This document shows, one piece after another, positions 1 to 60,240 of a stretch of 64,000 nt of DNA (position 1 is the first letter of the stretch; the number at the start of each line of letters is the position of its first letter). Origin of the DNA: Trichoplax adhaerens. Its lineage: Eukaryota; Animalia; Placozoa. The stretch lies in the NCBI RefSeq assembly GCF_000150275.1, contig NW_002060947.1:604695-668694 (forward strand), written 5' to 3'. The position numbers and the translations under genes were made by a program. The notes under the pieces were generated by a model. That model had not been told where the DNA came from. It worked only from the letters and a program-made list of their open reading frames with translations, and did no database searches.

Positions 1-2242
1 TCCTAATTATCGTAGATTTTTTTATCAATTACAAAATACTAGTGGTAATGGTCGAAAGTTAATTTATTTAATGGAGTATTTCTTCCAATTAGCAGTGCTA
101 GAAAGTGCCTATTCATTTGTTACACTCTTTTACATCATATAAGCGTTTTGGCAGCAATTGCGAAGCATTAAGCTTTAACCGATTTAAGTTATGTAATTTT
201 TTGAAATTAGTTGTAAATACACCTTTATACTTAGTATTAGTCGAAAATAAATAGAATAACACTCTCGGGTAGGGTACTATATCTAACATTTAGGCATTCA
301 TTTCTCCTCTATCGCTACTGAAAATAATAGTTTATAGAGAACGGTGTGGTGATTACTGTACATAAATTGAAAATATCCATTAACGGAATTTTGTATGTTA
401 GATGATGATGGTTATCGAAGGGGTAGGCGATTATAGAGCAGTTAGTGTAGACTTTAAAATATTTTGGATTAGTGCGTATTAAATTAAAGAAATATGTGTG
501 TCAAGGCAATTAGTAGATTTCAATATTTGAGTTTACCACAAGTTAAGGTTCTAAGTACTCTTTCGATTAGTCAGTTAAGAGGCGTTTAGTTGTAGAATTA
601 TTGAAAGTAAAGTCGCTAACTATCTGTCACAACCGAGATTGCAAGACAAAAATTAAGGGGCTTCTTGCCTCTAAAGTAGTCTTAACTATCTAAGTACCTA
701 ACTCTAAGCACTCTTTAATCTGCCAAACCTAGATTCGAGTCTTAGACGATAGAATACTCACGCTAAGAATCAAAACTTTATTCTAAAAGCTATTTATTAA
801 AATATCCAATTGAACTCACAACTTACAATCTGCTGCTAACCATTGATAACTGTCTGTTATCAACTAACTTATCAACTCCCTCAATTAAGAACTTTGAGGC
901 TTTTATATAGCCTCACAAACTTCGTTGGTGCAATACAATAATAAATTTATAGCCAAGTCTACATGCTAAGTAAAGCAAGAATCACAACACACTTTCTATG
1001 ACATTTTATATTAGTTAATTAATGGCTAGATTTTAACATATGATTCATTACTCAACGAAATTATATCATGGATGACGCAATAATTAATTAATTGCCATAC
1101 TATCAATCGAATTTGTTTTAAGTGAATGTTTATTGCAACGCTATATTAACGAGCTCTGTACTTGGTAGAGAGTAAATTCATTTCCACACCCAATAGGGCA
1201 CATTAAGTAAGAGAAAACTATTTCAATCATTCAAAAGTTATCGAGAAAAAATCTTAAATCACATTCAATCGAGTACTTAAAGTGAGGGAAGACTATTTCA
1301 ATCGTTCCTTGGTTTATAAAATCATACTTTAAACGTAATTAGTCAATTGGAGCCAAAAATCGAAGATAGGCTTTTCAATCATCAATTAAAGAAAAATAGA
1401 GTATTATGATCGTAATTAGTTATTCAATCGCTCGCGTTTAAACGTGCTGTAGTCGGACTTTTGATATAAATTTATAAGACAAGTCATAAGAATGGATTAG
1501 GTATGGGAGGAAATGTCTACTTCATGTCGATTAGTTGTTAAAACATCTACCTCATTTATTGACTAATTATGTACTTCGAGATTAAGCTTTTCGAAGTATG
1601 ACAGCTGGTACACACATTAAACACTATCGTATAGTATACTACCACCAAAAATTAAAAAAATTATATTTCTTTGCGATAACGTTTTACCACTTTGAACCGC
1701 AGAACAGACCTATAAATCTTGATATGATTCGTACCTTAAATATACTTTTGATACAATAGCAACGACTTTCTCCTGATCCAAAAGTGTTGTCAATCTTAAT
1801 AAAAAACTTCATGAATTCATAATAAATGTTATTTTGAGCAATTCCGATTGACTTAGTCACGTAAAACCATATTATAGAGACGTTACCTTATGGCAAATAA
1901 CGACGATAACAATTGATGTTTAAATACCCGTAGCTGGAGCCGTATTGCTTACTGTATCAGCAATTCACATTTTGGTAGCAGAAGTTATATATTTATGCTG
2001 AGTTGCAATAAGAGTACTACTGTTATTACATCCTTAATACGAAGAAAATCTTTCCTGTCTGTATTTCTGTAGTGTCAATTCAGAAATGTTTTGCTACTAT
2101 TGATATTGTTAAATTCTAAACTCTAAATTACCATCTCGCCTCATTATTAACGCTAGCATTATTTCTTTTACTAGCTCAAAATATTGTCGTCGAAGTTCCT
2201 GATATTAATAGAAATAAAAACTCAAATCATTTGGCAATACTT

Positions 2243-4112
2243 ATGGAGGAAAATATCTGTCGGAAGCTTTTTCCAATTCAGCATCGCCCACCTGCTTTAT
2301 CTAAAGTAGCTCTACAAGGAGTTCTAAAAGATCTGCTTGGTACCGACATTGGCATTAGCAGTGTCTATGAATTCTGCAGTTTTTGTGATAGAAATTATCA
2401 TATCCACATCGACCACGACAAATTTAAACATTACCTAGAGAGCAAAGACTTGCAACTACAAGATGATCAATTTAAACAAAATCAACAAAAACCATCTTTC
2501 GTCTTAAAAATTTTAAATCCTTGCTACCTTGAATACTACGAATTAACACTTGCTCGACTCAAATTGCTACAATACTTGCATAATTGTGGGATACGGTGTC
2601 CTAAGATATTACCGTTACATAATGGCAACATCATGAAAATAGTCCGACTTTCGGATGAAAAAGTTAAGAATCAGGCAGAAAGCATGGAACTCATTGCTTA
2701 CATACTAATTTTTATTGAAGGCCAAACTATAGCCAAAATTCATTCGAACTTCGATTTATGTTATAGACTGGGAAGATTTGCAGCAGAAATTGATATTAAA
2801 TTGCAGGTAAGAGTTTAAAGCTAGTGTAGCCATGTTTATCAAAGTAGCAGCCGTTTCGAATTGTAAACATAGGGAATACTGTTCTGTAATGTAAATACGC
2901 ACTCTTCATTGTGATACTAATTACAGATGGTAGTAAAAAAAGCAGGATCAAGTCCAAAGTAGGCTCTGCAATTCTAATAGATTATGGGCACGTCATAGTG
3001 TTTTGATAATTTATACAGTTATTACAAACCTAAATTTATAACTTGAGAAAAATAAAGCTACTACAGAAAACAAACACTCCGAAATTACTGTCAGATTTGT
3101 CCTCCTAATATTTGCCTACAGTACAACTCAAAGTACTAAAAAACTTCCATCGTCCATTACTAGACGAAAGTGAACCCCAACTTTATTGAAAATTGCTCAA
3201 TTCAAAGTAAATCTACCTAATTCTTTGTTATCAGTACATAGATAATATTATAAAAATATGCACTTATCTACTAAAAGCATGTAAAATATTACAGATAAAT
3301 TAATATTAACACATTCCTAGATAAGTAACCTTAAGGAAACGATGCTATGACAGCTGCGAATATATTACTCCATAACGATAGCACTTAGCTAAATCCTTTA
3401 TTTTTAATATTTTCTATCGTCTAAATGAAATGCAACATTCGTTTTATTTTTTAAGGCTTATTCTGATGAAACTATAAAGCAAGCCAACAATATTTGGTCT
3501 TTGCAAAATTTTCCAGCATGTAAATATTATTTAAAATATTGTTCAGACGAAAAAAGAGGCTTTTTGGAAAATATTTTCAATCAAATATGTAGAACCTACT
3601 TTAATAAACATGTCAAGAACCTACGAACCGCCATAATTCATGCTGATTTCAATCATGGGAATATCATTGTTAAATATAATAACGAAACTAATAACTACGA
3701 TATCAACGGAATAATCGATTTTGGTTTAGTGAATTATAGTTGCGTGGTCTTCGAATTAGCCGTTTTGATGGCTTACACTTTATTGACTGTGCCGCATGAT
3801 CGTATCAGAGCACTTGGTCATTTAATTTCAGGCTTTCATTCAGTATTTCCACTTACTGAAGTAGAATATAAAAGCATCTACACACTCATTATACTTCGAT
3901 TAGTGCAAACATCAATTTTAACAAAATACAGTTCCAATCTACAACCAGACAACGAATTTACTATGGATAGCTATGAAGAAAAGTTGGAAATTCTAAAATT
4001 TTTGTTATCAATACCTGAAAGAGATGTATATGCTGTATGGGATAAAATTGTTGGATTTTCAGTTGGAGAAGACGTTTATAATTATCTAGAAAGCGAAAAT
4101 ATTCAAATTTGA
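2243..4112 (+). CDS. HYKK: Hydroxylysine kinase-like (APH/choline-kinase-fold phosphotransferase), paralog 1; exons 2243-2806 and 3456-4112
   Basis: ORFs 2231-2818 and 3501-4112 join in frame across a phase-0 intron (TTGCAG|GTAAGA at 2806/2807; TTAAG|GCT at 3455/3456). Motifs: RPP..L, SFCDRNY, FVLKILN, Brenner motif IIHADFNHGNII, GIIDFG, FELAV. Confidence 0.85.
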
Positions 4113-5554: not shown

Positions 5555-6906
5555 TTTGTTTGGATTTCAAAATTAACAATGCGCGTAATAAAAGCTAGCA
5601 AATTCGAAAATAAATCTATAATACTTTGCAACTATTCGATTTCTGACATTAAAATTAAAATACAGCGGAAAAATTAAATTATTGATTTACACCGAATCGC
5701 ATGAGATATCTCGATTTGAAGACAGCAGGCTGCAAGAACTAGCTCCTAGTAATACGTATCTAACTGCAAATTGCATGTTACTTGGATAAAAGGCCAATTC
5801 AGTGATTCATGACTAGATGGAACGACACTGTATATTTGATAGGCTGCACAAAGTTAATACTAGATTAGTTTAAGATATGCGTATAGTGTATTAACTTTTT
5901 CACCTTTATGCATGTACTTTCTATTAATGTCTTGAAGTGTAGCGAAGATATGATCATTTGAACTCTGTTCTAGGATTTAGTATAATTTATTATTTCAGAT
6001 ATCCTTACACAAACATTTTTATGTTAACATTGATGAATATATTGAATATTTATATCCGAGTATTTCTTCTTATGGTACTTTTTTTTGTATTACATGATGC
6101 TAGCATCCTATCTTATCATTAGCTATTTCAGTAGTGATATTCACTATCTCTGTTAGTCATCTTAACTTCTACAGCCAAGGATTAGAAAAATTTTTTCAAA
6201 TATCTTGTGATATCGTAAAAAACGAGTAGATTTGATCTGTTCTAAAACATTTTAACATCCTATATATAATCTACGCGTTTCATATGCAATAAAACTCTTT
6301 GCATGATAAACATAACTGAATGTTAGGTTCCTATAAACGTAGTGTTACCTAGTAATGATATCATTGCTACTGCACTATCTTTCAAGTTAAAGCTTTCATG
6401 CAATTAATATGCTCTCTTACAGTTTCTGTTTTATAGATTTGAGCGGAAATTCGGTTTTAGGCAACTGCTTAAGATAATCCAATTAGCTAAAATGTGAAGG
6501 CAGCAATTGTACAGAATTGAATCGAAATTTATTTATACTGCTCACTATCGCTAGGTACGCCCTACTGCTCAAGGTTTTTAGCTCTAAGTCCTTCATTATC
6601 ATAAATTTCAATACTAGTATTAATTTCATGCTATGGAAACTGGAATACATTACTGCAATTGTATTGAATTCTATTGTGCTTCCCATAGAGACAAAGCAAT
6701 CATTAATTATTACATCAGCCATTAAGAATTGCATGTTGTATAGATCCTGGACATCAGCTCTATTCTTTACGGCCAATAATCCGTCTGGAGAGATTTTAAA
6801 ACGACGGTGCTTGTTGCACAATCTTGAAGCTTGGATACCGTTAGTTTCATGTGTTGAAGTTATACAAGATTACTTAACCATGCATACGGTTAATAATTCT
6901 ATTCTA

Positions 6907-8370
6907 ATGTTCTCACGAGTGAATTCGTTCCTCAAATGTAGCAACTATGATCGTGTAGCGTGCAAAGTCAAGGATTTCAAGTGTTTTCACTCCTCAGTAT
7001 ACCAAAAAATCCCCTTTACAGCCTTACCTTTGGAGAATAAGTGGCATCAGAAACGCCACTCTTTTAAGACACGTCCGCCAAATTTACCTAAAGATCAAGT
7101 CAAGGAAATTCTAACAAATCTTATAGGAGCTAATAACATTAATATTAACAATCTGAAGGAACTACCAAGCTACGCTGATCGAAATTACTACTTTCAACTA
7201 GATTATCCTATAATAAGCCGCCATTTTGGAAACTATCAAGATAGTTCCGTGCATACTTATAGTAAAATGGCCAAAGAAAACCAGTCTTACGTTTTGAAGA
7301 TATTAAGTTGTCCTGATCAAGAATCTTATGATTTACACCATGCTCGACTTTGCGCTATGAAGCATCTTTACAACACTGGAATTAATTGTCCTAGTCCAAT
7401 AAATCTAGCAAATCAAAAGTGGATAAAAACGGTCAAACTACCTCAACAGAAATTAAATGCTGGTAATCAAAGTATGGATAATTTCGAAGAACACATTGCT
7501 TACCTTTTAACCTATGTTGATGGTCAGACTGTAGCAACAATTCAGCCGAACGAAGACCTATTATACCAAATAGGAGGGTATGCAGGATTGCTCGATAAAA
7601 ATTTGCAGGTAAAAAAATTCTGCTCAGATCATGAACTGCTATCAGTGTCTACTGTGCATATCGATGATTTCTTATTTTCTACATGAATAGTCCAATTTCG
7701 TTATGTAGTAATCTATACAGCTAATTGCTGGTAATTACAAGCACTCTTTTTAATTTAGAATTTTTCGGATGACCGGCTAAAAGTAAATCGAAGTATTTGG
7801 TCAATTCACAACTTTTTGGAATTAAAACCCTATATCCAATATTGCCGAGAAGATAAAAGAGACTTTATGGAGCGAATTTATGATCGCTGCGCTAGCTATT
7901 TCCAAGTAAACATGAATAACCTACGTATCAATGTTATTCATAATGATCTTAACATTGATAATATTATCATTAAGCAAAATAATGGAGTAACTGGTTACAA
8001 AGTAGCAGGGATTATCGATTTCGGAGAAGTTGATTATGCTTTTACAATAAGCGAATTGGCTATCATGGTTTATTATGCAATGTGGATAATTAATCAAGAT
8101 CCACTTACAGCAGCTGGTCACTTAATTGCTGGTTTCAACTCTGTATTTCCTTTAACAGATATCGAATACAAGGGATTGTATACCATGATCTTAGCTAGAC
8201 TATTTCAATCCATAACTTTAGTAGATTATCATATTTCTTGCTTTCCAGAAAATGAATACCTAAAAGGGCACTATGACAAGAAATTAAAGATTTATGATTT
8301 ATTATCATGTGCCTCAGAGCGAAAAGTTTACAAAATATGGGATGAAATAATGAAAATTCGCAAGAACTAG
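6907..8370 (+). CDS. HYKK: HYKK-like phosphotransferase, paralog 2; exons 6907 (or 6880)-7608 and 7759-8370; N-terminal extension resembling a mitochondrial presequence
   Basis: Same phase-0 intron after LQ (TTGCAG|GTAAAA at 7608/7609; TTTAG|AAT at 7758/7759). Motifs: RPP, ELPSYADRNY, YVLKIL, VIHNDLNIDNII, GIIDFGE. The start codon is uncertain; the long upstream part of ORF 6517 is probably UTR/intergenic. Confidence 0.85.
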
Positions 8371-13576: not shown

Positions 13577-14176
13577 ATTTATGCAACAAGTTGCCATGGC
13601 ATCCTTGAATTTTATTCATAGCTATTTAGACGATTTTAAGTTTAAACAGTAATTAATTTCTAAATTAATACGCGTAGGATTTACAAGTTTATCTGATTTC
13701 ATATATCATTTGTACTTTTATTAGATCTTATTCGAAATTGAAAGTCGATTGTAACCTGATTGACCAACTTTCACGTTACTGTATTTCACGGACCTTAAAA
13801 AATGAAGTACGTGTAAAATGCTTCTAAATCAATAAACATTAATGTCAGTTTGAGACCAGACAATAATACATTCTTTCCCTGGGGGCTCTGAATTTTTGAA
13901 TGTATTTAATGAATAATCCTAGAACAGTAAAGTCCTCTAATAACAATGGATTCAAATTACTAATGTACAGCGTGCGGAAATAGTGCCGCAATTGAACAAT
14001 AGTAAAAACATTGTTACTTCTTTAAGGACGACGCCCGACATGTCCATATTGATTTACTGTAATAGTATTCACTTTTATGAGAAAGTAATCATATTTGATT
14101 CAATTCTTCTTTGTAGATATTGTAATACAGATGATAATTAAGACAGTTTCCCTATTATTTGTCAATGTGTATATAA
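13577..14176 (+). promoter_or_regulatory. Promoter of Arg-rich peptide gene A: conserved 18-mer (13577-13594) overlapping an X-box-like element, TTCCCTGGGGGCTCTGAA (13875), TATATAA (14170)
   Basis: The elements recur at nearly identical spacing upstream of gene B. A non-coding exon 1 ends at TGTAAG|GTAAG (14231/14232); its acceptor is TTATAG|GACT at 14416/14417. Confidence 0.6.
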
Positions 14177-14425
14177 GCAGGTATCTTTTAGCTTTCGCCT
14201 CATTTTTTTTCGATCCCACGGTAACTGTAAGGTAAGATGAACGCTAAGATACGGATAAATTGTTTGTGAAAAATATTTTCAAGAAACTGAAAATATTTCT
14301 AATGTAAAAGTATAATCTATGTCTCGTCATCAAGGCTCTTGTATAACTAATATCCTTTTAGTACAAATAGGTAAATAAAATTAATATAATTTAAATCTTA
14401 TAAACGCCACTTATAGGACTGAAAA

Positions 14426-15045
14426 ATGAATTTCAAATTGGTTGTCATCGCCGCTCTATTGTTTGTAGCCTGTGTTGCTGCCGCCGACACAGCTAAGAAA
14501 GCTGAAACCCCTGTCAAACAGGAAGCTAAAACTCCAGAAAAGGAGGAACCAGCAGAGAAGGAAGAACAAGAACAAGAAGAAGAAGAGGAATCTCCAGTTG
14601 AAGAACGTGAAGAAGATGACGAGGATGAAAACGCACTTCAAGAAAAAGAAAATGATGATGGTGAAGTAAAGGAAGAAGAATCCTCCGATAAGAGCGTAAG
14701 CAATAATCGCTAGCATCATTAAACAGTTATTAAAATTTCATGTAGAAAACTTTCGAGCTTCTCTATCACAAGTTTTGCATTGATAATTTGCTCAATGAAG
14801 TAATTAATTACATTGAATAACATTTCAATTTTATTTTATAGCTCTGGAGCCGCCGTCGCCGTCGTCGTCGCTTCTATATCCGCCGTCGTCGTTATATCCG
14901 TCGTCGTATCTTTCTCTACAGGCGTCGCTGCACCTGCTATTATAGACGTCGATTCTTATACAGACGTAGAGTCTTATTAAGGCGTAGAGTCTTCTTATTA
15001 AGGCGTAGATTCCTCTACAGACGTCGCCGCTTTGGCAAGAAGTAA
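14426..15045 (+). CDS. Secreted Arg-rich cationic peptide precursor A (157 aa; candidate antimicrobial prepropeptide); exons 14426-14695 and 14842-15045
   Basis: Signal peptide MNFKLVVIAALLFVACVAA, then a Glu/Asp-rich propiece. Phase-0 intron AGC|GTAAGC ... TTTTATAG|CTC. The last exon reads LWSRRRRRRRFYIRRRRYIRRRIFLYRRRCTCYYRRRFLYRRRVLLRRRVFLLRRRFLYRRRRFGKK*. AATAAA at 15274. Confidence 0.88.
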
Positions 15046-18000
15046 AAAGTTTCACGATAAGGATTTCGAAAAATTCAACAGCATTCAGTGAAGATGATGC
15101 CGTTAAAACTTGATTAATGAGATATTTTTTAGCTGTCTTTGAAAGTACCTTGTAGTATTTCATTGTTAGAAATCAATTTAGGCTCAAAAGGGTAGCACTA
15201 CTACTTAATTTCAGTTCGATTTTATATATTGTAAAATCTGTAGATCCCTTTATATGCTTGCAATTTAAGCATCAATAAAGAGACATTAGATTTGCATTAC
15301 ATGAACTTGTGTATTATATCTGCCTAAGAAAAGCTACAAGATATAATTCTGAATTTTAGCATGTTACCGTGCTTGCTTTGTCAGCATTCGATAAATGCTA
15401 CAGGAATAAACTAGTCAATACTATCAGTATCTACACACACAACTGATCCAAAGCCGACCGAGAGTTATACTGTACGTTAATATTAACGTTATCAAGCTAG
15501 GCTTGTGAACGTGATTTTCGTACAATTAAACTGACAAAATAGCATTAAAATAACAATCCATGTTACCAATTGATCGAATATAGTAAGACTCAATATGCTG
15601 TATTCATTGCTTAGTAATACTCGGCAAGTACTCTCCGCCAGTTAGTTTCCAGTAAGTGCGACTAATCTATCGTAGAGAGTATCTACTTCTCAATTATTTA
15701 AACGTGTTATACACCGTTAGACTAATCGAAGATTATTATTCGAAATTGTAATGGCAACAGAATCTCTTACTATTTCGTTGCTGTAGCTTTTACTAGCACA
15801 TAATCAAGTTATTGCCGAGATTATTGATATCTGGTTTGACTACGCGCAAAGTTCGCTACTATAATGGTAACTATATGCAATTTGCTGTTGATCAAATCGC
15901 TAAGGGCACCTTTCAGTAGCTGTTTTTATCATAAACTCTAACTTAATAAACTCATGCTAGTTAACTTACTCATCTGCCATGTTAAATGGTATAGAAATGG
16001 ATCTTTATGCAATTTTCAATATTAATTCCGAGGTTATTATAAATAGCAGTTTTTGGACTACCGGTATATTGTTTTATCGATTCAGCCATAGAAACAGTTA
16101 ATTGGTACTGATAGAAAATCCATTTTCAGCAGAAAGACAAGCATGCTTATACTAGTACGAAATTGTTTTATTTTACGTCAATATTACCGCCTACGTAGTT
16201 ATTTAAAAAAAATTGTTACATCATTTGCAAATAATTGAAACTCTAGAAACTCTAGCTTAATGATATAAAAGTTTCAGAAGATGTATGATTTACCTATACC
16301 TAACTTAGATTGCCATCTAAATATGATTGCAATATCACTTACCATCTTAGCTAAACTGAAGACTTATCAGAATATAGTACGCCTACTGCCTAGAATCAAC
16401 GTAATTTAATCGCTCCTCTTTATTTGTACCTACAGTTTTCTTAGGCGCCCCATTGGTTAGACTTGCAAGAATTTAATCTTAAAAAGGATCGGTCATAAAA
16501 TACGATTGCAAAACACTATTTTTCTACTATCTAGCTTAAAAAAAATTGCTTATGAATTTTGAGAAAAAAGTTCAAGTATAAAATTATATTTACATTTCCA
16601 GAAAAGATAATTAAGAAATGAAGATTAGTTACGTATAAAAAAGTTAACTGAATCAACTTAATCATCAATAACTAATTGAGAATACTAGCAAGTTTTTTAT
16701 TATTATCTGATGTAGGTATATTGACAAATGCTGTCTCTTCGTCACCTAATGACTCTAATGTCTGCGTATATTGTATACGGCACATGCTATCGTTACTAAA
16801 TAGTTAATTAATAAAAGTGTGTGCATAACGTACTAAAGGAATGCAATTTACCATTGAAAGGTTGCTATATGACATACTGATAGTATAGTAACTCAATAAT
16901 TGTACTTTACCGTTAATTACTGTACTAATTACTGAAGAATATACTAATAGTAGCAGCATCGATGATTAATTGGCTGGAAAGTCATCAAAACAAAAACTAA
17001 AGCTAAGTTCACTTTCTCTCCACTCGTTAATGTAAATGTTGTAGGCTCACACTCACATTCTCATAACGGAATAGCTATTTGAATGATTTGTGAAAGTTAG
17101 GCTACAGAAAATGTGAAACCAAAAGCAGTAAATATATTTAATAGCTTTTAGATACTATTCTTTCAATTACTGAAATTGCAAATACTGGTATCCTATAAAA
17201 TATTTTATGATACGTTATATAAGAGATTTACAGCTCAAATTAATTATATTGGTAAAATTGGTGACATGAAATAGAATTTTTACATCCTTTTAAAGGCGAC
17301 AACATGAGAATTAAAACAAAGAATAATCATTTAGAAATCTTTGGAATGAAATGTAAAATCAATGTCTAGAATATCCTTCAAGTGCATTAGTAAACATGGT
17401 TTTTTTAAATGTTTGTTTCTAACATGCGATCAATATTCATTTAGGATAATTAAATCATAAATAAATAGTTTAATTCGATGCTTAGACTGTTTTAACATTA
17501 ATGATAATTCTTATTTCGAGAATACCTTTCAACCTGGTAAGTAATATCTAGGATAACAATAACATTAAAAATCCAAATTATTATTTATAACAAACTTGCT
17601 GAACGTATCGCCTCAGATTATTGCTACTTCTAGCTCGGTAAGGTTACTCTGATCAGCACCAGATATTATTTTGTGGATTCTATACTGTTCCTAAAGGCAG
17701 AAGTTTTGAGAATTATAATGTCGGAGTGCGACTATTATTGTAGCATCGTTGTTCAACGTACGAAAGCATTCTAATGTCATGATGGATGAACACATATCTA
17801 TTTTTAATTTACTAGGAGAATAATAGTAGATTATAAGTGTGTTTGTAATTTTAAACCTAATTTAATACTTATTAATTGAAACATCCTACTTATTTAAGTA
17901 TTTGAGATTTTAATACTTATTAAATGGACACTCGAGATTCTGCATACTAAATTACCGATCATACTTGCATCTTCTTGGCAACTTTAAACGCTATTATGCA

Positions 18001-20560
18001 CGCAGAGTGTGCATAATACATGATATCGCTTGAATAACAAGGTACGAGTGCCGTATATTAGCATAGATGTAGTATCTATTAAATAGTTTGTTTGAGCTCA
18101 GGATTACTGGCATTTATTTAGATGCTGACCTGCTGCACTATTGATTAAGATTAGCGTTACTTTGTAATTGTATATCAAGTTAAAAGTTTACGATGATAGT
18201 TGTTACACAAATGACTGATATTTCATACTTACAATTCCGAGAGTTGGATTAATGCAGTGTTATTAAGGTATTATCGATAAATGATAAGTTGCTAATAATA
18301 ATTATAAAGGTCGAATACATTGGAAATATCTTTTTATTTTTAATATTACTTGATAAAGTATAATTATTTAGTTACTGATAGCAGCTAATTCCACATTGTA
18401 ACATATTCGTGTAAGAAGCAGCAAAACTCGGTTCATAGTGAATTTGTATATCCTTACAGCAGTACGTCGCTCAATTATATTTTTGTGCTTACGCTACATT
18501 ATTGACTGTAAACAACAACGATTTACAGTCATGTATCGCTCAGTAATTTTGTACGCTAAACTGTAGTAGTGTACCCGTCCAACTACAAAATCCAGTCTAT
18601 TCGCGAAACACCCAGTTGGTATAGTATTATATATAGCTATATATGTGGTAAATTTACGAGTTTAAATAAATTTTATTAGTCCTTGGAGAAGTGACGCAAA
18701 AGAAGTTATTAGGATAATTATAACCAATTTTTCAACTGAAAAGATATTTAGATAATTTTTATTACGCTATTCGTTTATTCGTCTATAATTGGTACTGTAG
18801 TCTAAGGCAATTATTATACCGTATAGGTTTAAAAAGCAACTCCGATAGATGAATCTACTTTGACTATTATTGAACCGGATAATAACGCCTTGTTACGGAA
18901 TAGCTTTGCATAGCTGTCGTAGCATAATTTTAATAAGTTAACTTATGTAATAACGTATTGATATTAATTTATCCATGGTGTCTTGTAGATTTAGTAGATG
19001 GTTGTATACTTTATTGTAATATCCATGACTGAAAATTTCCTATAAATTGGTTGACTTATTAATTAAGTTTGGGTTTAATTTTTATCTAAGAGAGACTAGT
19101 GCTTGCTGTAGCTACGGATGATGGTAGGATCGTCAATACTTAGATTCGTACTGTAGGTAGATGTCAGGGTGGATAAACCTGACAGTAAGCAAGTAAACTC
19201 ATAGTGTTATATTTCTAGTTGTAGTTTTAATTCTCTTAATATAAATTTCGGTTTGTAACACGCCTGAAATTGCATTGATACAAGATTTAATTACCACTTA
19301 TATTAAGATTTACTAAAAGTACAGTATAAATTAAATCAGTAAAAGTTCTTCGGCAAATTCTAAAAAGTCTTAGTTATATAATAAAAGATCGGTGAAATTT
19401 TTCCTTTAAACCCCCATCGCTTAATAACGTCCGTCTATCCAAAAAGTTATCTTGAAATGTAGACCGAGTTTAGTATAATACTAAGACGATAGTAGCATAG
19501 AATAAATGGTTATTATTATTAACGATATTAATTAAGCTTCCGTATCTCAATAGAACAAAAAATATCTTTGAAAGTACAGTAGATTATCTAAATATAATGA
19601 AGCGGTAGTCATTAAAACAATAGCAGTTGCTGCTATTATAGCTTGCTAAACTTTTAGTTTAGCTAATTTATTATTCCAGCAATTATTCTAAATAAACATG
19701 ATTGCTCGCTTTGTAATAATTTATTCACCTACCGAGTAATTTTAGCATATTTTTCATTAAAAAGTAATCGAATGACGTTCATAGCTAAATCATTATCCGC
19801 ATAATTGTATGGTGATGGCATTCATAAGTCACGCCATTTACTTTTATTTTAATGATAATTACTTGAGTGGAATACTAGCGTTTGACATCTAAAATTGTAG
19901 CCAATATTATCAGGACCGACGTCAAAGTGATTCCACTAAATGACGGCTTTCTAACAGTTTATTTATGAAGCAGTATTATTGACTAGACGATAATTTATGT
20001 GTTAATGATCAAATGGCAAAGTACTGGTGGTAGTTGAGAAGTTCATTACAGTACTGACATTGCCCACCTGTAGATTCGAGATTTACGTATAATTTTAAAA
20101 AAGTTATCAGTTTTAAGTTTGATCTTGTTTTCTTAATGTATTATTTTGATTTAGTAGACGTTGTAATAAATTTTATCCATTCTTGTATTTTAATAACAGT
20201 AGTGTAACGGGTACAGAAATAATATATTATGTTCATATGATCAACAGCGGTTTCATGCTAAGTCTGTACGGTACCTTTTGATAATTGAATTGTCGCAATG
20301 TATTACAGCAACACTGAATTTGAAAAGGTCTTATAAAAGTCAGTTTGAATGGCTAGAAGAGCTAAGAGCAAATAGAGATATTCGTTAACAAAATGTCCTT
20401 TAACTGTTATATTATTAGCATTACGTCGCAATGCTAATTATAAATGCTGCCTCCAATGGCAGATTTGCGTTATTGATTCTTATATAATGATATATATATT
20501 AGCGTAAAAATGGCAGTATACTGACAATAGGCGTTATAGATAAACGCAGTAATACAATTC

Positions 20561-21161
20561 ATTTATGCAACAAGTTGCTGTAGTATATTCTATTATAACT
20601 ATTAACAGTTAACTGTTATAAATTAAAACTTACAGGCTATTATTACATTGTCATACTACTATACATAGGCTTACAATGAAATTTTAACGGAACTCATAAA
20701 TTTTTGTAGCGATGATTGATTTAAATTAACTATTACTGGCTGAAATATAAGATGTTAAATATCCAATTGCTACGACGAAAGAACTAATCGTCCATCTATA
20801 CCTTATTCATAAACCGGCGAATTATCAATATGTATTTAACAATAAGTTTATTTTTTCCCTGCGGGCTTTGAAATTTAAATATTATATTGAATGAATTACT
20901 TCATTGCGTTATATTCAAGCAAAAGAAGAGGATTTTAATTGATAGTACTAATTGCCTGCAAGTGATTATCATAATTTAGACGAACCGTAGGGATTCTTAT
21001 TAATTCGAATGACGCATCTGAGTTATTCAATTTCAATTATTAGCATCTATATTTACCAGATAAATGATCTTCCTTATTTATTCCTTTATTGTTTTGCAGA
21101 GTCTTTGTGATAAAGTTACTAGCTAAAATATTGTCGTCATTAGCCGTGGAAAGGTATAAAA
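20561..21161 (+). promoter_or_regulatory. Promoter of Arg-rich peptide gene B: conserved 18-mer (20561-20578), TTCCCTGCGGGCTTTGAA (20855), TATAAAA (21155)
   Basis: Same motifs and spacing as gene A. Non-coding exon 1 ends at TGTAAG|GTAAG (21215/21216); acceptor CCTTAG|GACT at 21386/21387. Confidence 0.6.
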
Positions 21162-21396
21162 GTCACACATCTTCTGATTATCATCATATCCCGTTGTTGG
21201 AGCAATAATTGTAAGGTAAGGTGAATTTCGTATACATTAATGTATCGAGTGATAAAAATTGATCGAATACATATCTAAAACGTTTTGTTGAATGTTGCTA
21301 TATTTTATAATCTTATTTATTATCGATGTCGATATAATACATGTAGATATTAAATTGATTGGTTATCGTATTTTAAATAACCTTAGGACTCATAAA

Positions 21397-22218
21397 ATGA
21401 ATTTCAAATTGGTATTGATCGCTGCCCTTTTATTCGTGGCCTGTGCTATTGCAGCCAACACACCCAACAAAGCTGCTGAAGTACCGGCAGAAAAAGAGGT
21501 AGCTCCTCAAGAAGACAATGATGAAGCTCGTGAAGACAATGATGAAGAATTTCCGATAGAAGAAGTACGTGAAGATGACGAAGAGGAATCAGCTTTACGA
21601 GAGGATGAGCCTGAAATGAAGGAAGGCGTTGCACCTACTGTCGAAGAGAAAGCAGTAAGACATTTACTTAGATATCTAAAAATAGCGGTTATGATTACAT
21701 GAATAGATTATTTCTTAGGTCTATTTAATGTTACAGGTTCGAAGTATCAATTCTCTAAACGGAGTAAACAAATCCCGTATTTATTTAAACTTTAATTATA
21801 AATTTTTTAATTTGCTAGTGGTGGCGTCGTCGTCGTCGTCGTCGTCGTGTTGTCGCTCGTCGCCGTTCCACCGTCCACTGCCGCTGCTACGGTAAGAAAA
21901 ACTTCAAGATTGCCACAAAGACAGAAGAACAACCCACTACCGAAGAAGAAGAGGCTACTTCCGAAGAAAAATCGGTAAGTATTTTAGGGATAGACTCCCT
22001 ACAAAGTAGCAATTGCGGCGTTTATGCATAGAACTTATTGTAGCTTTTCTCAACCGTACTTTATGATTTGTTAGATACAGTGAACTAAATTAATTATCGA
22101 TCATGATGCATTCACTTTTATTTGACAGTGGGGAAGTCGTCGTCGTCGTCGTCGTCGTGTTGTTATTAGACGCCGTCGTGGTTGCTACTGCTATACTGTC
22201 TACCATGGCAAAAAGTAA
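21397..22218 (+). CDS. Secreted Arg-rich cationic peptide precursor B (167 aa, two peptide units); exons 21397-21654, 21819-21974, 22129-22218
   Basis: Signal peptide MNFKLVLIAALLFVACAIA, then an acidic propiece. Phase-0 GT-AG introns. Second coding exon: WWRRRRRRRRVVARRRSTVHCRCY-GKK-NFKIATKTEEQPTTEEEEATSEEKS. Third: WGSRRRRRRRVVIRRRRGCYCYTVYH-GKK*. AATAAA at 22461. Confidence 0.88.
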
Positions 22219-25200
22219 AAAAGTCCCATATTACATTTTCTGATAAATTTGATGCCAAAATATATCATGTATGGGGTGATAGAAAGTTTTTTACATTTAC
22301 AATGTACTTACAATTTACATCTAAAGAATGACATGATATATTTATAATTGGAAATTGTACTACTCGATAAGAATTACTCTTAGTATAGCTGTACCAAGTA
22401 AGCTAAACGTTTAGTTTTAATATCTGCATAATTGATAGAAACTTTCACGATTAAAATTTGAATAAAAATCATAGAGAATCGTAGATTTGCATTTCAAAAA
22501 GTATCCAACCATTATTGCGTACTAACATTTCGAGATTGAGTGGTATCTGTAATAGCAGTTTAAAATCTATACTGTACATTACAGACAAAGGAGTGAGGAA
22601 GTACGTGGTCTTAAAAATTTTGATTTCCAGTAAGTTAGTTACGGTCATTATTACTCTATGGGTGTTAATGTAAAGGCTATAGCGTTGGCTTAAGTCATAA
22701 CTGAAGAAGATTCGTATCTGTATACTTTATCGAGCGCCGCCTTTTTAATTTTAGCACTATTGCATTCAATGATAATCGAACTATTCTAGTTAAGATTGTT
22801 TTATTGATTAATTACTGTCTCTGATGTAAGATTTTTCACATTATAAGTAATATACGGTACAGCTAACGGTACGAGCATGGGTAGTGCATAAAAATTGGAC
22901 TTCATCGAAATAATTTACTGGTCATTTCTGCGATACTGTTCTTTTCTGCTTATCATTAGTATTTAGTCTATAGGAAGTTAGAGTTTAACTTTTATTGCAT
23001 TCATACATGCTATATAAGTACTGCCGAGCTAATATAAAGTACTGCTTCTGTCTGGGTTTTATTCCGATTAATGTTAAACTGATTTAATGAAAGTCGTAAT
23101 ACTTAATCATATTTAGGCTACAATAGGACGATGACGTTAAGCAATCAATATCTATTCTATAATATGTAGCAGATAGCTGCCATCATTGTCAATTCCATAT
23201 CTAGTAGTAATCACACTTTTCCCTAGAGAATTTAAATACTGGAGCGTTTAATGGCTACTTCACAGTATTAAAGATCTTACAAACAAAGCATTTGAAACTT
23301 TTGATTCGCAGTAGATTATTCTTATACCATGAATGTTAACTGAAAACATCTTTAATTTATATCTTACCTCTAGATTATTGTTTTGAGTGTTGTAGGTATA
23401 AATTTGTGGGAGAGTAGCCATAACCTTGCTGATCTTAACTTGTTGCTGATAATAATAAATCAAATTTTTGTTAGACTTTATTATGCCGTTCCATCTATGA
23501 TACTTCATTATCTCTCATTAACAAATTTTATACTATACATATGTAATTAGCTCCAGGGCGTCGTAATTTCATTTCATTTTATTCATTATTGCTAGTTAAG
23601 GTTATAGTACAGCTGTGTTACATCCTGAAAGCCTTCAACCCTATTTTCTTACTAAGATAGTACAGAATGCATGTTGTTTTGCAATATATTTGAGGAAGTG
23701 GATTTACTGAGTTTCTTACTATAGACGATACGTCGATGATAGAAAAAATGACTCTCTAAAAGCGATTTCGAACTCTATCTTGTTGCTTATTGTTGTTACA
23801 GTCAACACAGGTATTAACGTTGTTAAAGCCGGAGTGCCGGCTTAGGAAAAATCAGTAAATTGGGAAAATGATGTCGCACGATAATTGGAAGACAACAAAG
23901 CTCTAGCAGAAAGAGCGTGAAGCAGATGGAATTAGGCATTTCCCGACTAAATTTTGACCCTTCCCCAAAAATCCCTCGTTTCCCAGTTCTAATTTTGAAC
24001 AAATTTAACTACTTACTACCGCTTTTAAAAAAAACTACGAGACAGGAAGCGAGCTTACAATGTTAAAAGCCAACAAATAGCCCCAAATTTAGAACCCACG
24101 GCATATGATCGTAAATATAAAGTAAACTCTGCGTATATATTAGATTGATAAATGAAAAAAAAAGATTAGTAAGTTAAGAAAGGTGATGATAACGCAATGG
24201 GTTAAGCGATATAAGTAACATGAACTTGGTAGTTATCGCATCGCCAACTTAATTTTTTGTGACTTTATTTCAATGCGGTAATTGAAGTATAAATAGCTTC
24301 CGTTATGTTCTCTAGTGTGACACTAGGTCAATCACGCAATAATTGCTAGATATTACCAGTCTATCATACATAACAGCTTCATTGATCTTTATAGGTAGCG
24401 TAAAATTCAATCAACGAAATATTGTATTATTTCGAATCTGGTAGTAGTTATCAAGCCATCGAAGGGTTATTCTTCCTAGATGTCGTTGTATCTACTTAAC
24501 TCCGCTCTCTGTAAAGAGTTCAAGTACATCAAACCTTTAACTTAATTCGCGCAGGCAACAAAATAGAAAATCGCTGTTATTACTTCGATTTCATACAGTC
24601 ACATACAAGCCTATACTGTACAATGTATATCGCCTTTTTATGCAATAAACTATGCTACGTGGGTTACAGTATCCCTGCTAATATTCCCATGAATGATGTT
24701 GATTGCTTGATATTTCTGCTGACTGCTACATTATTCATGTTAAGATCAATGTTTTGTTTCTTTTTGGCTAATACGCGTATATAAATCATCGCATGTAATT
24801 GCCATACAAGTTACTTCTACATTTACGAAATAATAACGAATCTATTTTTTCTGAATGAATTCATGAAGGTTGTTGCCGGCGTTGCTTTATACAAAACATG
24901 CGTAGATATATAAAAAGATCGCAGGTTATTAGCTGCAACTCATCGGGAGAAGATGGATATGTAATTCATTTTAACGATGACTAATGGAATGTAAATATGG
25001 TGTAAGAGAGTAATCATGATAATTCAAGAATTATTGAGTATCAATGTCATTTCGTATACAGTAACTTGATGGTGGTGATCGTTGCTGGATTTTCCCAGCG
25101 TATCCTGTACTGTATACCAGAGTTCCGCAAAAAGGAAAATTTTGATGCTTGACAGTTTTCGTGTGGGTTGTCTGTAGCGTGATCCTTTTACAAAACTCTG

Positions 25201-25286: not shown

Positions 25287-26200
25287 AAGTGTTTAGCACA
25301 ATGTTTTGAGGAGATGAAGCTGGAAATGTCTGTCCGTCCACGAATGATGAGTCCAGGACTTAGACCTGACGGACAGACGACGTCAAGTCTGGTCCAGGTT
25401 TTCTTCTAGTAAGGTCAAGTACTGCATAGTGTACAGTGTACAGTACAGTATTCTACAGTACGTACTGTATACCGTACTGTACTGTACACTGTAGCGTTAT
25501 GGATGACTTGAAAAAAGTACGTGGAAACTCCTTTGGACGGACAGACATTGGATCTGACAGTATTTGGTCAATAAATTGTATGACATCTCCAACACTTCAT
25601 TATGATAGCACTTTAGTATTGCAGACAGTCGATTCTGTATTGAGTGGTTTTTTTCTAAATCAAGTCATATTACATCGCATTCCATTACCTGTTACTAAGC
25701 TCTGCTTAGAAGCTGTCAATTTTAGATTATAAATGATATTCAAATGAATACGAGTGATTTCGAAAACAGACACGGAAGATCTATACTGAGTCACTTTTTT
25801 TCCACACTTTCGGTCTTATCGGGTATGAAAAGTCCGTCCATCCGAGGAGAGATTCCAGTCTAGTAGTTCACGGTATAGTCAGGAACTATTAAGATTAGGG
25901 TACAGTATAGTACTGTACTGTAGAATGACCAGAAAAATGGTAAAACCCACTCATTATTTTGCACTGAACAGCCGCTATTAATTTTAATTAATAACAACAT
26001 CGACAATCTTATAGGACTGTCTCCAAGTGGAACTTAGTAACAGATAATGAGATTGAGCGTAATATTACTTAATTTAGAAAAGAATCATCAGTCTATGTAA
26101 AATCCACCATCAACATACTAAAGTACTGTCATAACAAAGTGTTCGACGCAATATTTTGGACGAGATGAGGCCAAAAATGTCTGTCCATCCAAGAGTGATC
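25287..26200. repeat. Cluster of direct and inverted copies of an AAGTGTT..GAGATG..AATGTCTGTCCRTCCA module around a GTAC/TACAGTA-rich core, upstream of HYKK paralog 3
   Basis: AATGTCTGTCCGTCCA at ~25325 and its exact reverse complement at ~25534. A ~60-bp diverged direct copy lies at ~26135-26199. GTCCGTCCATCC occurs at ~25832. Confidence 0.6.
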
Positions 26201-26357: not shown

Positions 26358-27865
26358 ATGCATTTAGATTCAGGTTCAGATTCAGGTACAGATTCAGGAA
26401 GTGATTCAAGCTCAGATTCAAGTACAAACTTCACTGCAGATTCAAGCCATGATTCAAGCTCTGATTCTGATTCTGATTCTCAACGACCGCCGCCTCTTTC
26501 AAATACAAAGATCAAATCCATGCTAGAAATAATGGTTGGAGTTCAGCCTCAAGTTATCATCGATATTAAAGAGTTACAAAGCTTTGTTGACAGAAATTAT
26601 TTAATTAAGATAAATTATAGTGGTATGTTAGAGTCTGCCTTTGCAGCTGATAATACTTCAGCAGACGAAGAATCAAGTACGATAGTGCAGGATAATGCCA
26701 GTCAACGTTATGTCTTGAAAATTTTAAATAGTAGTGATAGCCGAAATATCAATACAGCACTCGCTAGATTACACGCCATGAAATATTTGTATTCTCTTGG
26801 TATTAAGTGTTGCAATCCAATGACATTATTAGACGGTGAGCTGACGCTCAAATTACACCTACCAGTGCAGGAAGTGGATGATGCTGATGATAGAGAAACT
26901 ACTAGAGAGTATATTGCTTACTTAATGAATTATGTAGAAGGTGAAATACTGTCCAAAGTTGAGCCAAACCTTGATATATTTTGCAAAGTTGGAAAATATG
27001 CGGCTGTCCTAGATGGGCATTTGCAGGTGAACTATTACTAGTTGATTTGAATAGCTTGAAATAATTAAGTTACCAAGAAGCAAATTTGAAATTGTAAATA
27101 AAACTCGTACGGTACTGTATATGTATTAGATATTTTTCCTGTAGAACGGTACTTGTTCACAGAAACTGCTGATGCACTCATTTTGTGCAGCTTTTCTGTG
27201 ACTTAATTGACGTTGGATTGCAGCTAATTGAAAATGATTTGATTTTGCAGTCTTTTTCAGACGATCATTTAAAGAATTACCACGGTATGTGGTCGCTTAA
27301 GAGTTTCCTAAAGCTAGATAAATATCTGCGTTATTGTCCAAGGAGTAAAAGAAGATTTTTGAAGTGCATTTACCATTATTGTTACAAATTTTTCAAAACA
27401 GAGGTTCCAAACCTACGAACAGCAGTCATTCACAATGATCTAAACGATGATAATCTTTTGATAAAATTAAATACGCATACAAATTCATATGATATTGCTG
27501 GAGTCATCGATTTCGGCGATGTTGACCACACGACATTAATTTTTGAATTAGCAATTTTAATCATTCACATGATGGTTACATGTAATGATAATCCTATCGA
27601 ATTGGCTGGACATATTATCTCAAGTTATCATTCAGTGTTACCGTTGACTAAAGTAGAATATAATGGATTATACATGGTGGCGCTGGCTAGATTAGTTCAA
27701 GTAATTGTGCTATCAGAGTACGAGCATAAACATAGCCCCGATAACGACTATGTCATGTATCAATATGATGCGTTTTGGTCACTACTAAGGTTACTATGGT
27801 CTACTTCAGAAGAATCTGTATACCAGACTTGGAACAAAATCATCAATTGCAATTTTGATGTCTAG
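26358..27865 (+). CDS. HYKK: HYKK-like phosphotransferase, paralog 3, with an N-terminal Ser/Asp-rich tract; exons 26358-27026 and 27251-27865
   Basis: Same phase-0 intron after LQ (TTGCAG|GTGAAC; TTTTGCAG|TCT). Motifs: RPPPL, ELQSFVDRNY, YVLKILN, VIHNDLNDDNLL, GVIDFGD, FELAI. Confidence 0.88.
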
Positions 27866-42159: not shown

Positions 42160-43410
42160 TTTTATAAAGTACAGTACAGTAGTCCTTTACCGGAGAGGAA
42201 GTTACTGTCTGTACTGTACACTGTACAGTGTACACTCTGTGTCCAGTACTGTCTTCACAATACAGTACTGCACCGTCTAGAAAGTCACACTGAAAGGCAG
42301 CGTACTGCATGCATTTGAGTAGTCTCCCGCAGTGTTCTAGTCCATACGCATCATTGCAAACTCTGTATACTGGACGCGTATACAGTATACAGTACGTACA
42401 CGATATATCACTGTTAACCAAATCTTTTAATATCATACAGATAAATTCTTATTCCTCTCTGGTTAGTATCAAATGCACACGTTTTATTTTGCAATGTATG
42501 ATCTAATTTTTAAAAATAAAAAAACTCACTATAAGGAGGTACGTGTTTATATCAAACAACCGCTACAGCTACTGTAAATAAATAATAATAATAGACTGTC
42601 ATAGAATAGAAAATATTATTGTCATTAATTTAATTTAATTAATTATACACTATAGAGTGAGTACTGTACGTAATAGAGGCCCCAAAAAATAATAATAAAG
42701 CGGAGAAATTTGCATCATTACTGTAAAGTACTTTACAGTACAATGAAAAATGAATCAATTACGCGTACTCATACTGTACTCCAAATTTGAAAGGAGGACG
42801 GACAGTAAATCGGACACATTTGCGCCTTAGGTCCAAAATATGTCTACAGTATGTACTGTGAAGTACAGTATGATGGGACATTTTTTCGAGCGGGATACTG
42901 TACTGCATGCAGACATACTGTACACTGTAGTACTGTATTTGCTGAGCTATTTGGATAGCTTTTAAAAAGTGCTACAGTGCTGTACGGCAGTACTGTACTC
43001 AGTGTACTGTATACTGTAGTACTGTACAGTACTGTACTGTACACTGTACAGTACTGTCTGGGTGGTTTACAAGTGCTTCGTATACAGTACTGTAGTACTG
43101 TACTCAGTGTACTGTACTGTCTGGGTGGTTTACAAGTGCTACTATACGTACTGTACAGTACACTATACACTATACTGTACAGTAGTATACTGTACACTGT
43201 ACCGTACAGTACAGTACAGTACAAGCTGAATTTCTCAAGTACTGTACACTGTACACTGTACAGTGTACAGCACAAAGTAAACCATGACCACCAGGAGTAC
43301 AGTACTGTACAGTAAGTAAGTAGCGTCATTACCTACTGTACTGCACACTGTACACTGGAGTCATAGTCATTTACTAGACTCTACTGTACACTGTACAGTG
43401 TACAGTGCAC
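42160..43410. repeat. Long GTAC/TACAGT/ACTGTA simple-sequence region upstream of the dynein heavy chain, including a short tandem duplication
   Basis: Very dense palindromic words (TGTACA, AGTACT, TACAGTA) at 42160-42400 and 42840-43410. GTACTGTCTGGGTGGTTTACAAGTGCT occurs twice (~43051, ~43114). Confidence 0.8.

Positions 43411-43742: not shown

Positions 43743-60240
<16,498 letters not shown>

Follow-up and report, generated by a model that had tools for sequence, protein, structure and literature searches.

Two adjacent genes, here called A and B, lie within a 64,000-nucleotide stretch of the Trichoplax adhaerens genome (G000:C1410:604695-668694; hereafter the window), and their predicted products are prepropeptides in which a signal peptide and an acidic propiece precede peptides that open with tryptophan and a run of arginines. 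Judged by their sequences, A and B are unannotated additional members of a placozoan family of approximately 25-30 genes, which was already proposed to be antimicrobial in 2025. Our preferred reading, which we consider probable but well short of secure, is that these Trp-polyarginine paralogs make amidated polycations for defence and/or pre-digestion. New here are the models of A and B, which are missing from public protein sets, the C-x-C-Y motif specific to the pair, and the periodicity of the gene A peptide.

Gene models of A and B

The coding exons of both genes are given in Table 1. Comparison of the first exons by BLASTP yielded 50% identity (E 5e-15), and the predicted signal peptides, as read from the translations, are near-identical, each having a core of hydrophobic residues and small side chains at positions -3 and -1; the proposal of a sequence-only reading of this DNA that two paralogous genes share a signal peptide and an acidic propiece was thus borne out. 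Likewise, all three Arg-rich exons (peptide A; B2 and B3, from exons 2 and 3 of gene B) have the features that this reading had described, namely an opening Trp with 7-8 Arg, a single C-x-C-Y per peptide (C-T-C-Y in A, C-R-C-Y in B2 and C-Y-C-Y in B3), and a G-K-K, the putative amidation signal, at the end or ahead of a spacer. Because the Arg exons have no start codons, the list of open reading frames (ORFs) gives the acidic halves only, as had also been noted. Pfam returned no significant family for any A or B exon. Within the AT-rich window (GC ~32%), runs of at least five Arg in the plus-strand frames and the M-N-F-K-L motif of the signal peptide are confined to the A and B exons, which argues that the exon pattern did not arise by chance. 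Furthermore, exons 2 and 3 of gene B have a long identical (CGT)n stretch in common, consistent with exon duplication; the peptides B2 and B3 are each shorter than 30 residues.

Table 1. Features of genes A and B in window coordinates, with paralogs whose public models are faulty. UTR, untranslated region.
Feature	Position	Strand	Content and basis
Gene A TATA-like box (putative)	14170..14177	+	Sequence reading; same offset to the 5'UTR exon as the gene B box
Gene A 5'UTR intron (predicted)	14232..14416	+	Donor and acceptor contexts near-identical to those of the spliced gene B 5'UTR intron
Gene A coding exon 1	14426..14695	+	Signal peptide and acidic propiece, 90 aa; propiece net charge -23
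Gene A intron (predicted), GT..AG, phase 0	14696..14841	+	Position and phase as in paralogs; design confirmed in paralogs by spliced proteins P0001 and P0013
Gene A coding exon 2	14842..15046	+	67-aa peptide with 33 Arg; L-W-S-R7 start, one C-T-C-Y, R-F-G-K-K and stop
Gene B TATA-like box (putative)	21154..21161	+	Sequence reading
Gene B 5'UTR intron, GT..AG	21216..21386	+	Joint 21213>21385 (cut +2) in one X12 contig
Gene B coding exon 1	21397..21654	+	Signal peptide and acidic propiece, 86 aa; net charge -20
Gene B intron 1, GT..AG, phase 0	21655..21818	+	Spliced in X6, X12 and X14
Gene B coding exon 2	21819..21974	+	W-W-R8 ... C-R-C-Y-G-K-K, then acidic spacer
Gene B intron 2, GT..AG, phase 0	21975..22128	+	Spliced in X6, X12 and X14
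Gene B coding exon 3	22129..22218	+	W-G-S-R7 ... C-Y-C-Y ... H-G-K-K and stop
Gene B 3'UTR, AATAAA near 22463	22219..22495	+	X6, X12 and X14 contigs stop at 22478-22495
Mis-modelled paralogs	L027 G000:C1399:1380558; L013 G000:C1411:6624554; H2 protein P0004		Public models TRIADDRAFT_64292, TRIADDRAFT_63910 and TrispH2_011546

Transcripts of gene B

Gene B is expressed. We aligned assembled contigs to window positions 20900-22600, and both coding introns were absent from the contigs of runs X6, X12 and X14, which represent three studies and have high contig depth; X6 is RNA on record. One 752-nt X14 contig covers all three coding exons and reaches approximately 22478. The runs matching gene B fell into two groups, those matching the whole stretch and those matching about half of its words, the latter being expected for mRNA, and X4 contigs covered the introns at low depth, behaving like DNA. 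The splice form put forward by the sequence-only reading was therefore observed for gene B; for gene A, we infer the corresponding splice from homology, given its canonical sites, its phase and the identical architecture of the paralogs. For two of these paralogs, the spliced protein is in public sets.

An X12 contig additionally stops at 22201 and resumes with a sequence that matches 23370-23399 exactly. The stretch that it leaves out (22200-23367) has CT..AC ends on the plus strand, corresponding to canonical GT..AG ends on the minus strand, and this one contig from one run suggests a spliced antisense transcript that overlaps the last exon of gene B.

A placozoan family of Trp-polyarginine precursors

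We searched the genome (G000; 105,631,681 bp in 1414 contigs) exon by exon and based the census on exon 1. Either the A or the B first exon retrieved 13-15 loci, and a profile built from ten first exons retrieved approximately 30 loci at E < 1e-3. At least 25 of these ~30 loci have, behind exon 1, a phase-0 intron and then an exon opening with W, WW or WS and 4-13 Arg; after this head, repeats of three Arg and 2-4 aromatic/aliphatic residues are usual, and the C-terminal ends are mostly G-K-K, G-K-S.., G-K or G-R. The junction context, Lys followed by Ala/Ser and then Trp, is conserved across the family. Tandem clusters were found at 6.59-6.63 Mb and 7.40-7.42 Mb of C1411 and at 4.75-4.78 Mb of C1410. 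The family profile scored A, B and the paralog L004 at 84-90 bits (A = 88), all three being rows of that profile; in searches of this one genome, exon 1 of L004 was matched by gene A with E 1.7e-4 and by gene B with E 1.6e-5. A genome search with the gene A Arg exon matched only itself, as low complexity defeats such a query. The pair had been read as a two-gene family with C-x-C-Y as its hallmark; the family instead comprises approximately 25-30 loci, and the motif occurs in A and B alone.

The family architecture is also conserved, by sequence comparison, in contigs of other placozoan-like organisms. Logan contig L029 combines a diverged exon 1 and the same intron with a W-S-R4 ... R-R-R-W-G-K-K exon, and aligns to L015 with 38 identical positions in 78 columns; the ENA metagenome contigs L056 and L057 carry an AMP3-like gene of the same design.

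Two departures from the common design were observed among the paralogs. L005, L006 and L042 (G000:C1411:7.40-7.42 Mb) have several short exons, each corresponding to one small K-W-W-R5-6 ... G-K peptide, which makes the predicted precursor a polyprotein. L014 (G000:C1385:20149) has a long poly-Asn run in its propiece and a Cys-containing Arg/Trp exon that lacks an amidation signal.

These results bear on whether the Arg frames arose accidentally from (CGT)n repeats within DNA that is non-coding or decaying, which we regard as extremely improbable. The Arg codons of the A and B exons are indeed mostly CGT/CGC and stand in runs, and the repeat common to B2 and B3 confuses contig assembly; however, the spliced, abundant and in-frame transcripts of gene B already contradict such an origin, the frame, phase and ending recur in at least 25 loci and in other species, and two paralogs have public "expressed protein" records.

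Public proteins and the published members

A profile search of 1.84 billion representative proteins gave 14 matches at E <= 0.001; seven of the 14 were looked up with a source name, all of them Trichoplax, and the unnamed ones carry the family signal peptide and acidic stretch. When the exon-1 ORFs of A and B served as queries, word-indexed protein searches gave no match, and since the profile search did find paralogs, this null result indicates absence from public sets rather than a lack of relatives. Consistently, word-indexed and profile searches run exon by exon found neither gene at any length in a 15-billion-protein collection; no public protein covers the A or B locus, and thus no annotation with a different function was encountered there. 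Among the relatives, the models TRIADDRAFT_64292, TRIADDRAFT_63910 and TrispH2_011546 (P0004, from H2) continue past exon 1 into the intron and leave out the Trp-polyArg exon. Because Arg exons are mis-modelled in this way, the family is under-represented in protein databases.

Exons 1 and 2 of L004 reproduce protein P0001, TRIADDRAFT_60631, residue for residue; exact matches of this kind between paralog products and RefSeq proteins assign the genome to T. adhaerens. TRIADDRAFT_60631 (Ta 60631) is the published "AMP3", one of five "arminin-like" prepropeptides, which have a signal peptide, change from acidic on the N-terminal side to alkaline on the C-terminal side and carry a Gly at the C-terminus (Mayorova et al. 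2025, PLoS One, PMC12013895). The arrangement of signal peptide, anionic propiece and cationic Gly-dibasic peptide, which the sequence-only reading had likened to arminins, agrees with that description; the same reading had taken A and B for a new peptide system, and they belong instead to a family with AMP3 as a published member (PMC12013895). AMP3 ranks with the most highly expressed genes of peripheral ventral epithelial cells, high expression there being given for AMP1-3 only, and fluorescence in situ hybridization placed AMP1 and AMP2 in cells of this type that contain dense granules (PMC12013895). AMP1 (Ta 55945) carries an "alpha defensin" annotation, and AMP2 is Ta 56030 (PMC12013895). 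Because exon 1 of L009 reproduces the "alpha defensin" annotation, AMP1 probably sits in the 6.59-6.62 Mb cluster of C1411; AMP1 and AMP2 are candidate members of the family.

Peptide chemistry and the proposed mechanism

Across ten genes, the net charge of the propiece ranges from -14 to -24 and that of the cationic part from +13 to +41, and the summed charge of the precursor lies within -7 to +12 in nine of the ten. The blocks of peptide A recur with a period of 6.5 residues (z = 6). The hydrophobic moment at 100 degrees per residue, compared with shuffles, gave z = -1.5 for A, -0.7 for B2 and -1.3 for B3, and a classical amphipathic alpha-helical antimicrobial peptide was rejected on this measure for all three. 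AlphaFold2, run on gene A exon 2 as a single sequence, returned one helix at low confidence (predicted local distance difference test, pLDDT, 67; predicted template-modelling score, pTM, 0.26).

Since genes with PHM-type copper-monooxygenase domains and with convertase P-domains are present in the genome, cleavage after Lys-Lys followed by amidation is feasible. Approximately nine tandem gene copies with a copper type II monooxygenase (PHM/PAM-type) domain occupy 105 kb at G000:C1411:2806091-2910315, an unusually large cluster of amidating-enzyme-like genes in an animal that makes many amidated peptides.

In the mechanism that we propose, the signal peptide would direct the precursor into the secretory pathway, and the acidic propiece would roughly neutralize the cationic part while the precursor is transported and stored. 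The cationic product would be one peptide (A) or two (B), in which a Trp-led run of 7-8 Arg is followed by further Arg triplets alternating with aromatic/aliphatic residues. Cleavage after Lys-Lys, loss of both Lys and oxidation of the Gly would then yield C-terminally amidated polycations, peptide A ending in Arg-Phe-amide. After release from epithelial secretory granules, guanidinium and aromatic contacts would bind the peptides to anionic surfaces of microbes or prey, which they would then permeabilize or cross. We think a polycation resembling protamine or oligo-arginine, with Trp/Tyr/Phe as anchors, more likely than a classical helical pore.

Several results weigh against this mechanism. 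Peptide A has neither helical nor strand amphipathicity, which makes a classical pore-forming helix unlikely. The charges of propiece and peptide are uncorrelated across the paralogs (r = -0.10, n = 10). The Arg triplets are potential convertase sites, and the intact peptide may not survive processing. Finally, the AMP label was proposed for the published members from resemblance only, without an activity test (PMC12013895).

The charge data can also be read structurally: propiece and Arg/aromatic peptide may form a complex coacervate that serves granule-core condensation, mucus cross-linking or rim adhesion during feeding. Each precursor yields polyanion and polycation 1:1 in rough charge balance; peptide A consists of Arg-triplet blocks with Tyr/Phe/Leu that are periodic and not amphipathic; transcript abundance is very high; and paralogs are expressed in ventral cells of the periphery whose granules are unusually dense, at the place where the animal seals itself to the substrate. 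We nevertheless consider this role rather unlikely, as the conserved head of Trp and 7-13 Arg and the predicted C-terminal amidation are more typical of bioactive peptides, and the fast diversification of the spacers suits defence genes.

If the Arg triplets are instead processed, the genes may be multi-copy precursors of hydrophobic/aromatic signal peptides of 3-5 residues, of which only the last is amidated. Arg-Arg-Arg is a plausible convertase site, in the paralogs L003 and L010 identical short units recur in tandem between the Arg triplets, and many short peptides serve placozoans as signals. In contrast, one or two Trp followed by 7-13 Arg at the head cannot sensibly be read as a cleavage site, the amidation Gly stands on the C-terminal unit only, and the units vary freely between paralogs and species, conservation resting instead with the Trp-polyArg head and the C-terminal end; on balance, we think this quite improbable. 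The pattern of a multi-copy neuropeptide precursor, in which every one of several similar peptides has its own cleavage and amidation signals, was not found, Gly and basic residues being present on the terminal unit only and the units between Arg triplets not being conserved. Identity with the placozoan RWamide or YYamide peptides, considered in view of members ending R-W-G-K-K or Y-Y-G-K, was rejected because the published sequences are unrelated.

Returning to amidated polycations for defence and/or pre-digestion, A and B might form a Cys-bearing subclass in which interchain disulfides at C-x-C-Y give covalent two-chain dimers (B2 with B3, or homodimers), natural toxins of the cell-penetrating type and possibly the agent that lyses algal prey in external digestion; more broadly, propiece and polycation might constitute, throughout the family, a built-in coacervate from which the rim cells form their dense granules. 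We give this extension little credence.

Other features of the window

Three tandem paralogs with APH-type phosphotransferase domains (PF01636, E 3e-7 to 7e-9) flank A and B on the plus strand, at 2231-4112, 6517-8370 and 26358-27865. A cytoplasmic dynein heavy chain gene extends over 43743-59843 on the plus strand, with a DHC_N2 match at 48378-50015 and its last 3012 codons in one open frame (50805-59843). Short TACAGTAC-type repeats, partly as inverted copies, occur at 25420-25500, 25900-25925 and 42844-43329, and as a result of these repeats long spurious ORFs appear on both strands.

Significance

Placozoans digest biofilms externally, and we know of no characterized placozoan host-defence or prey-lysis peptides, predictions aside. 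The family provides some of the most abundant transcripts of the placozoan feeding epithelium; most of its members, A and B included, are missing or mis-spliced in public gene sets, and, judging by the protein searches, A and B seem to be missing from the gene set of the cell atlases. Only once the gene models are right can single-cell atlases, peptidomics or synthesis address the action of such natural oligo-arginine peptides, and with the C-x-C-Y pair a defined variant is at hand to examine the importance of dimerization.

Comparison with known systems

Alpha-defensin precursors (PF00879 propeptide) likewise combine a signal peptide with an anionic propiece that balances the cationic product; A and B differ from them in having no six-Cys defensin domain. 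Against the PF00879 cut-off of 23.6 bits, L009 scored 23.7 bits, a match that is probably compositional, gene B scored 9.6 bits and gene A gave no match.

With protamines and the synthetic R8-R9 cell-penetrating peptides, the placozoan peptides have in common blocks of consecutive Arg with short neutral spacers, and their head run of 7-13 Arg falls in the length range known to cross membranes. Unlike these, they have a signal peptide, an acidic propiece, predicted amidation and aromatic/aliphatic spacers, and no nuclear or sperm context.

Hydra arminins have the same succession of signal peptide, anionic propiece and cationic C-terminal peptide. Arminin 1a ends in Gly-Lys-Lys and is amidated, and Hydra arminins are mixed in Lys and Arg and are not known to have long Arg runs. 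The Gly-Lys-Lys end with amidation is also given as a trait of Hydra arminins in the placozoan study (PMC12013895). The exon-1 profile search revealed no sequence relationship to them among the 1.84 billion representatives, in which we assume arminins to be included.

The closest counterparts are AMP1-4 of Trichoplax, AMP3 in particular, with which A and B have in common the signal peptide family, an acidic propiece containing a conserved motif, a phase-0 intron immediately ahead of the Trp, the Trp-polyArg head and, at the C-terminus, a Gly with basic residues. A and B are set apart from these AMP3 relatives by C-x-C-Y, and gene B by its predicted two-peptide precursor, with one peptide per exon.

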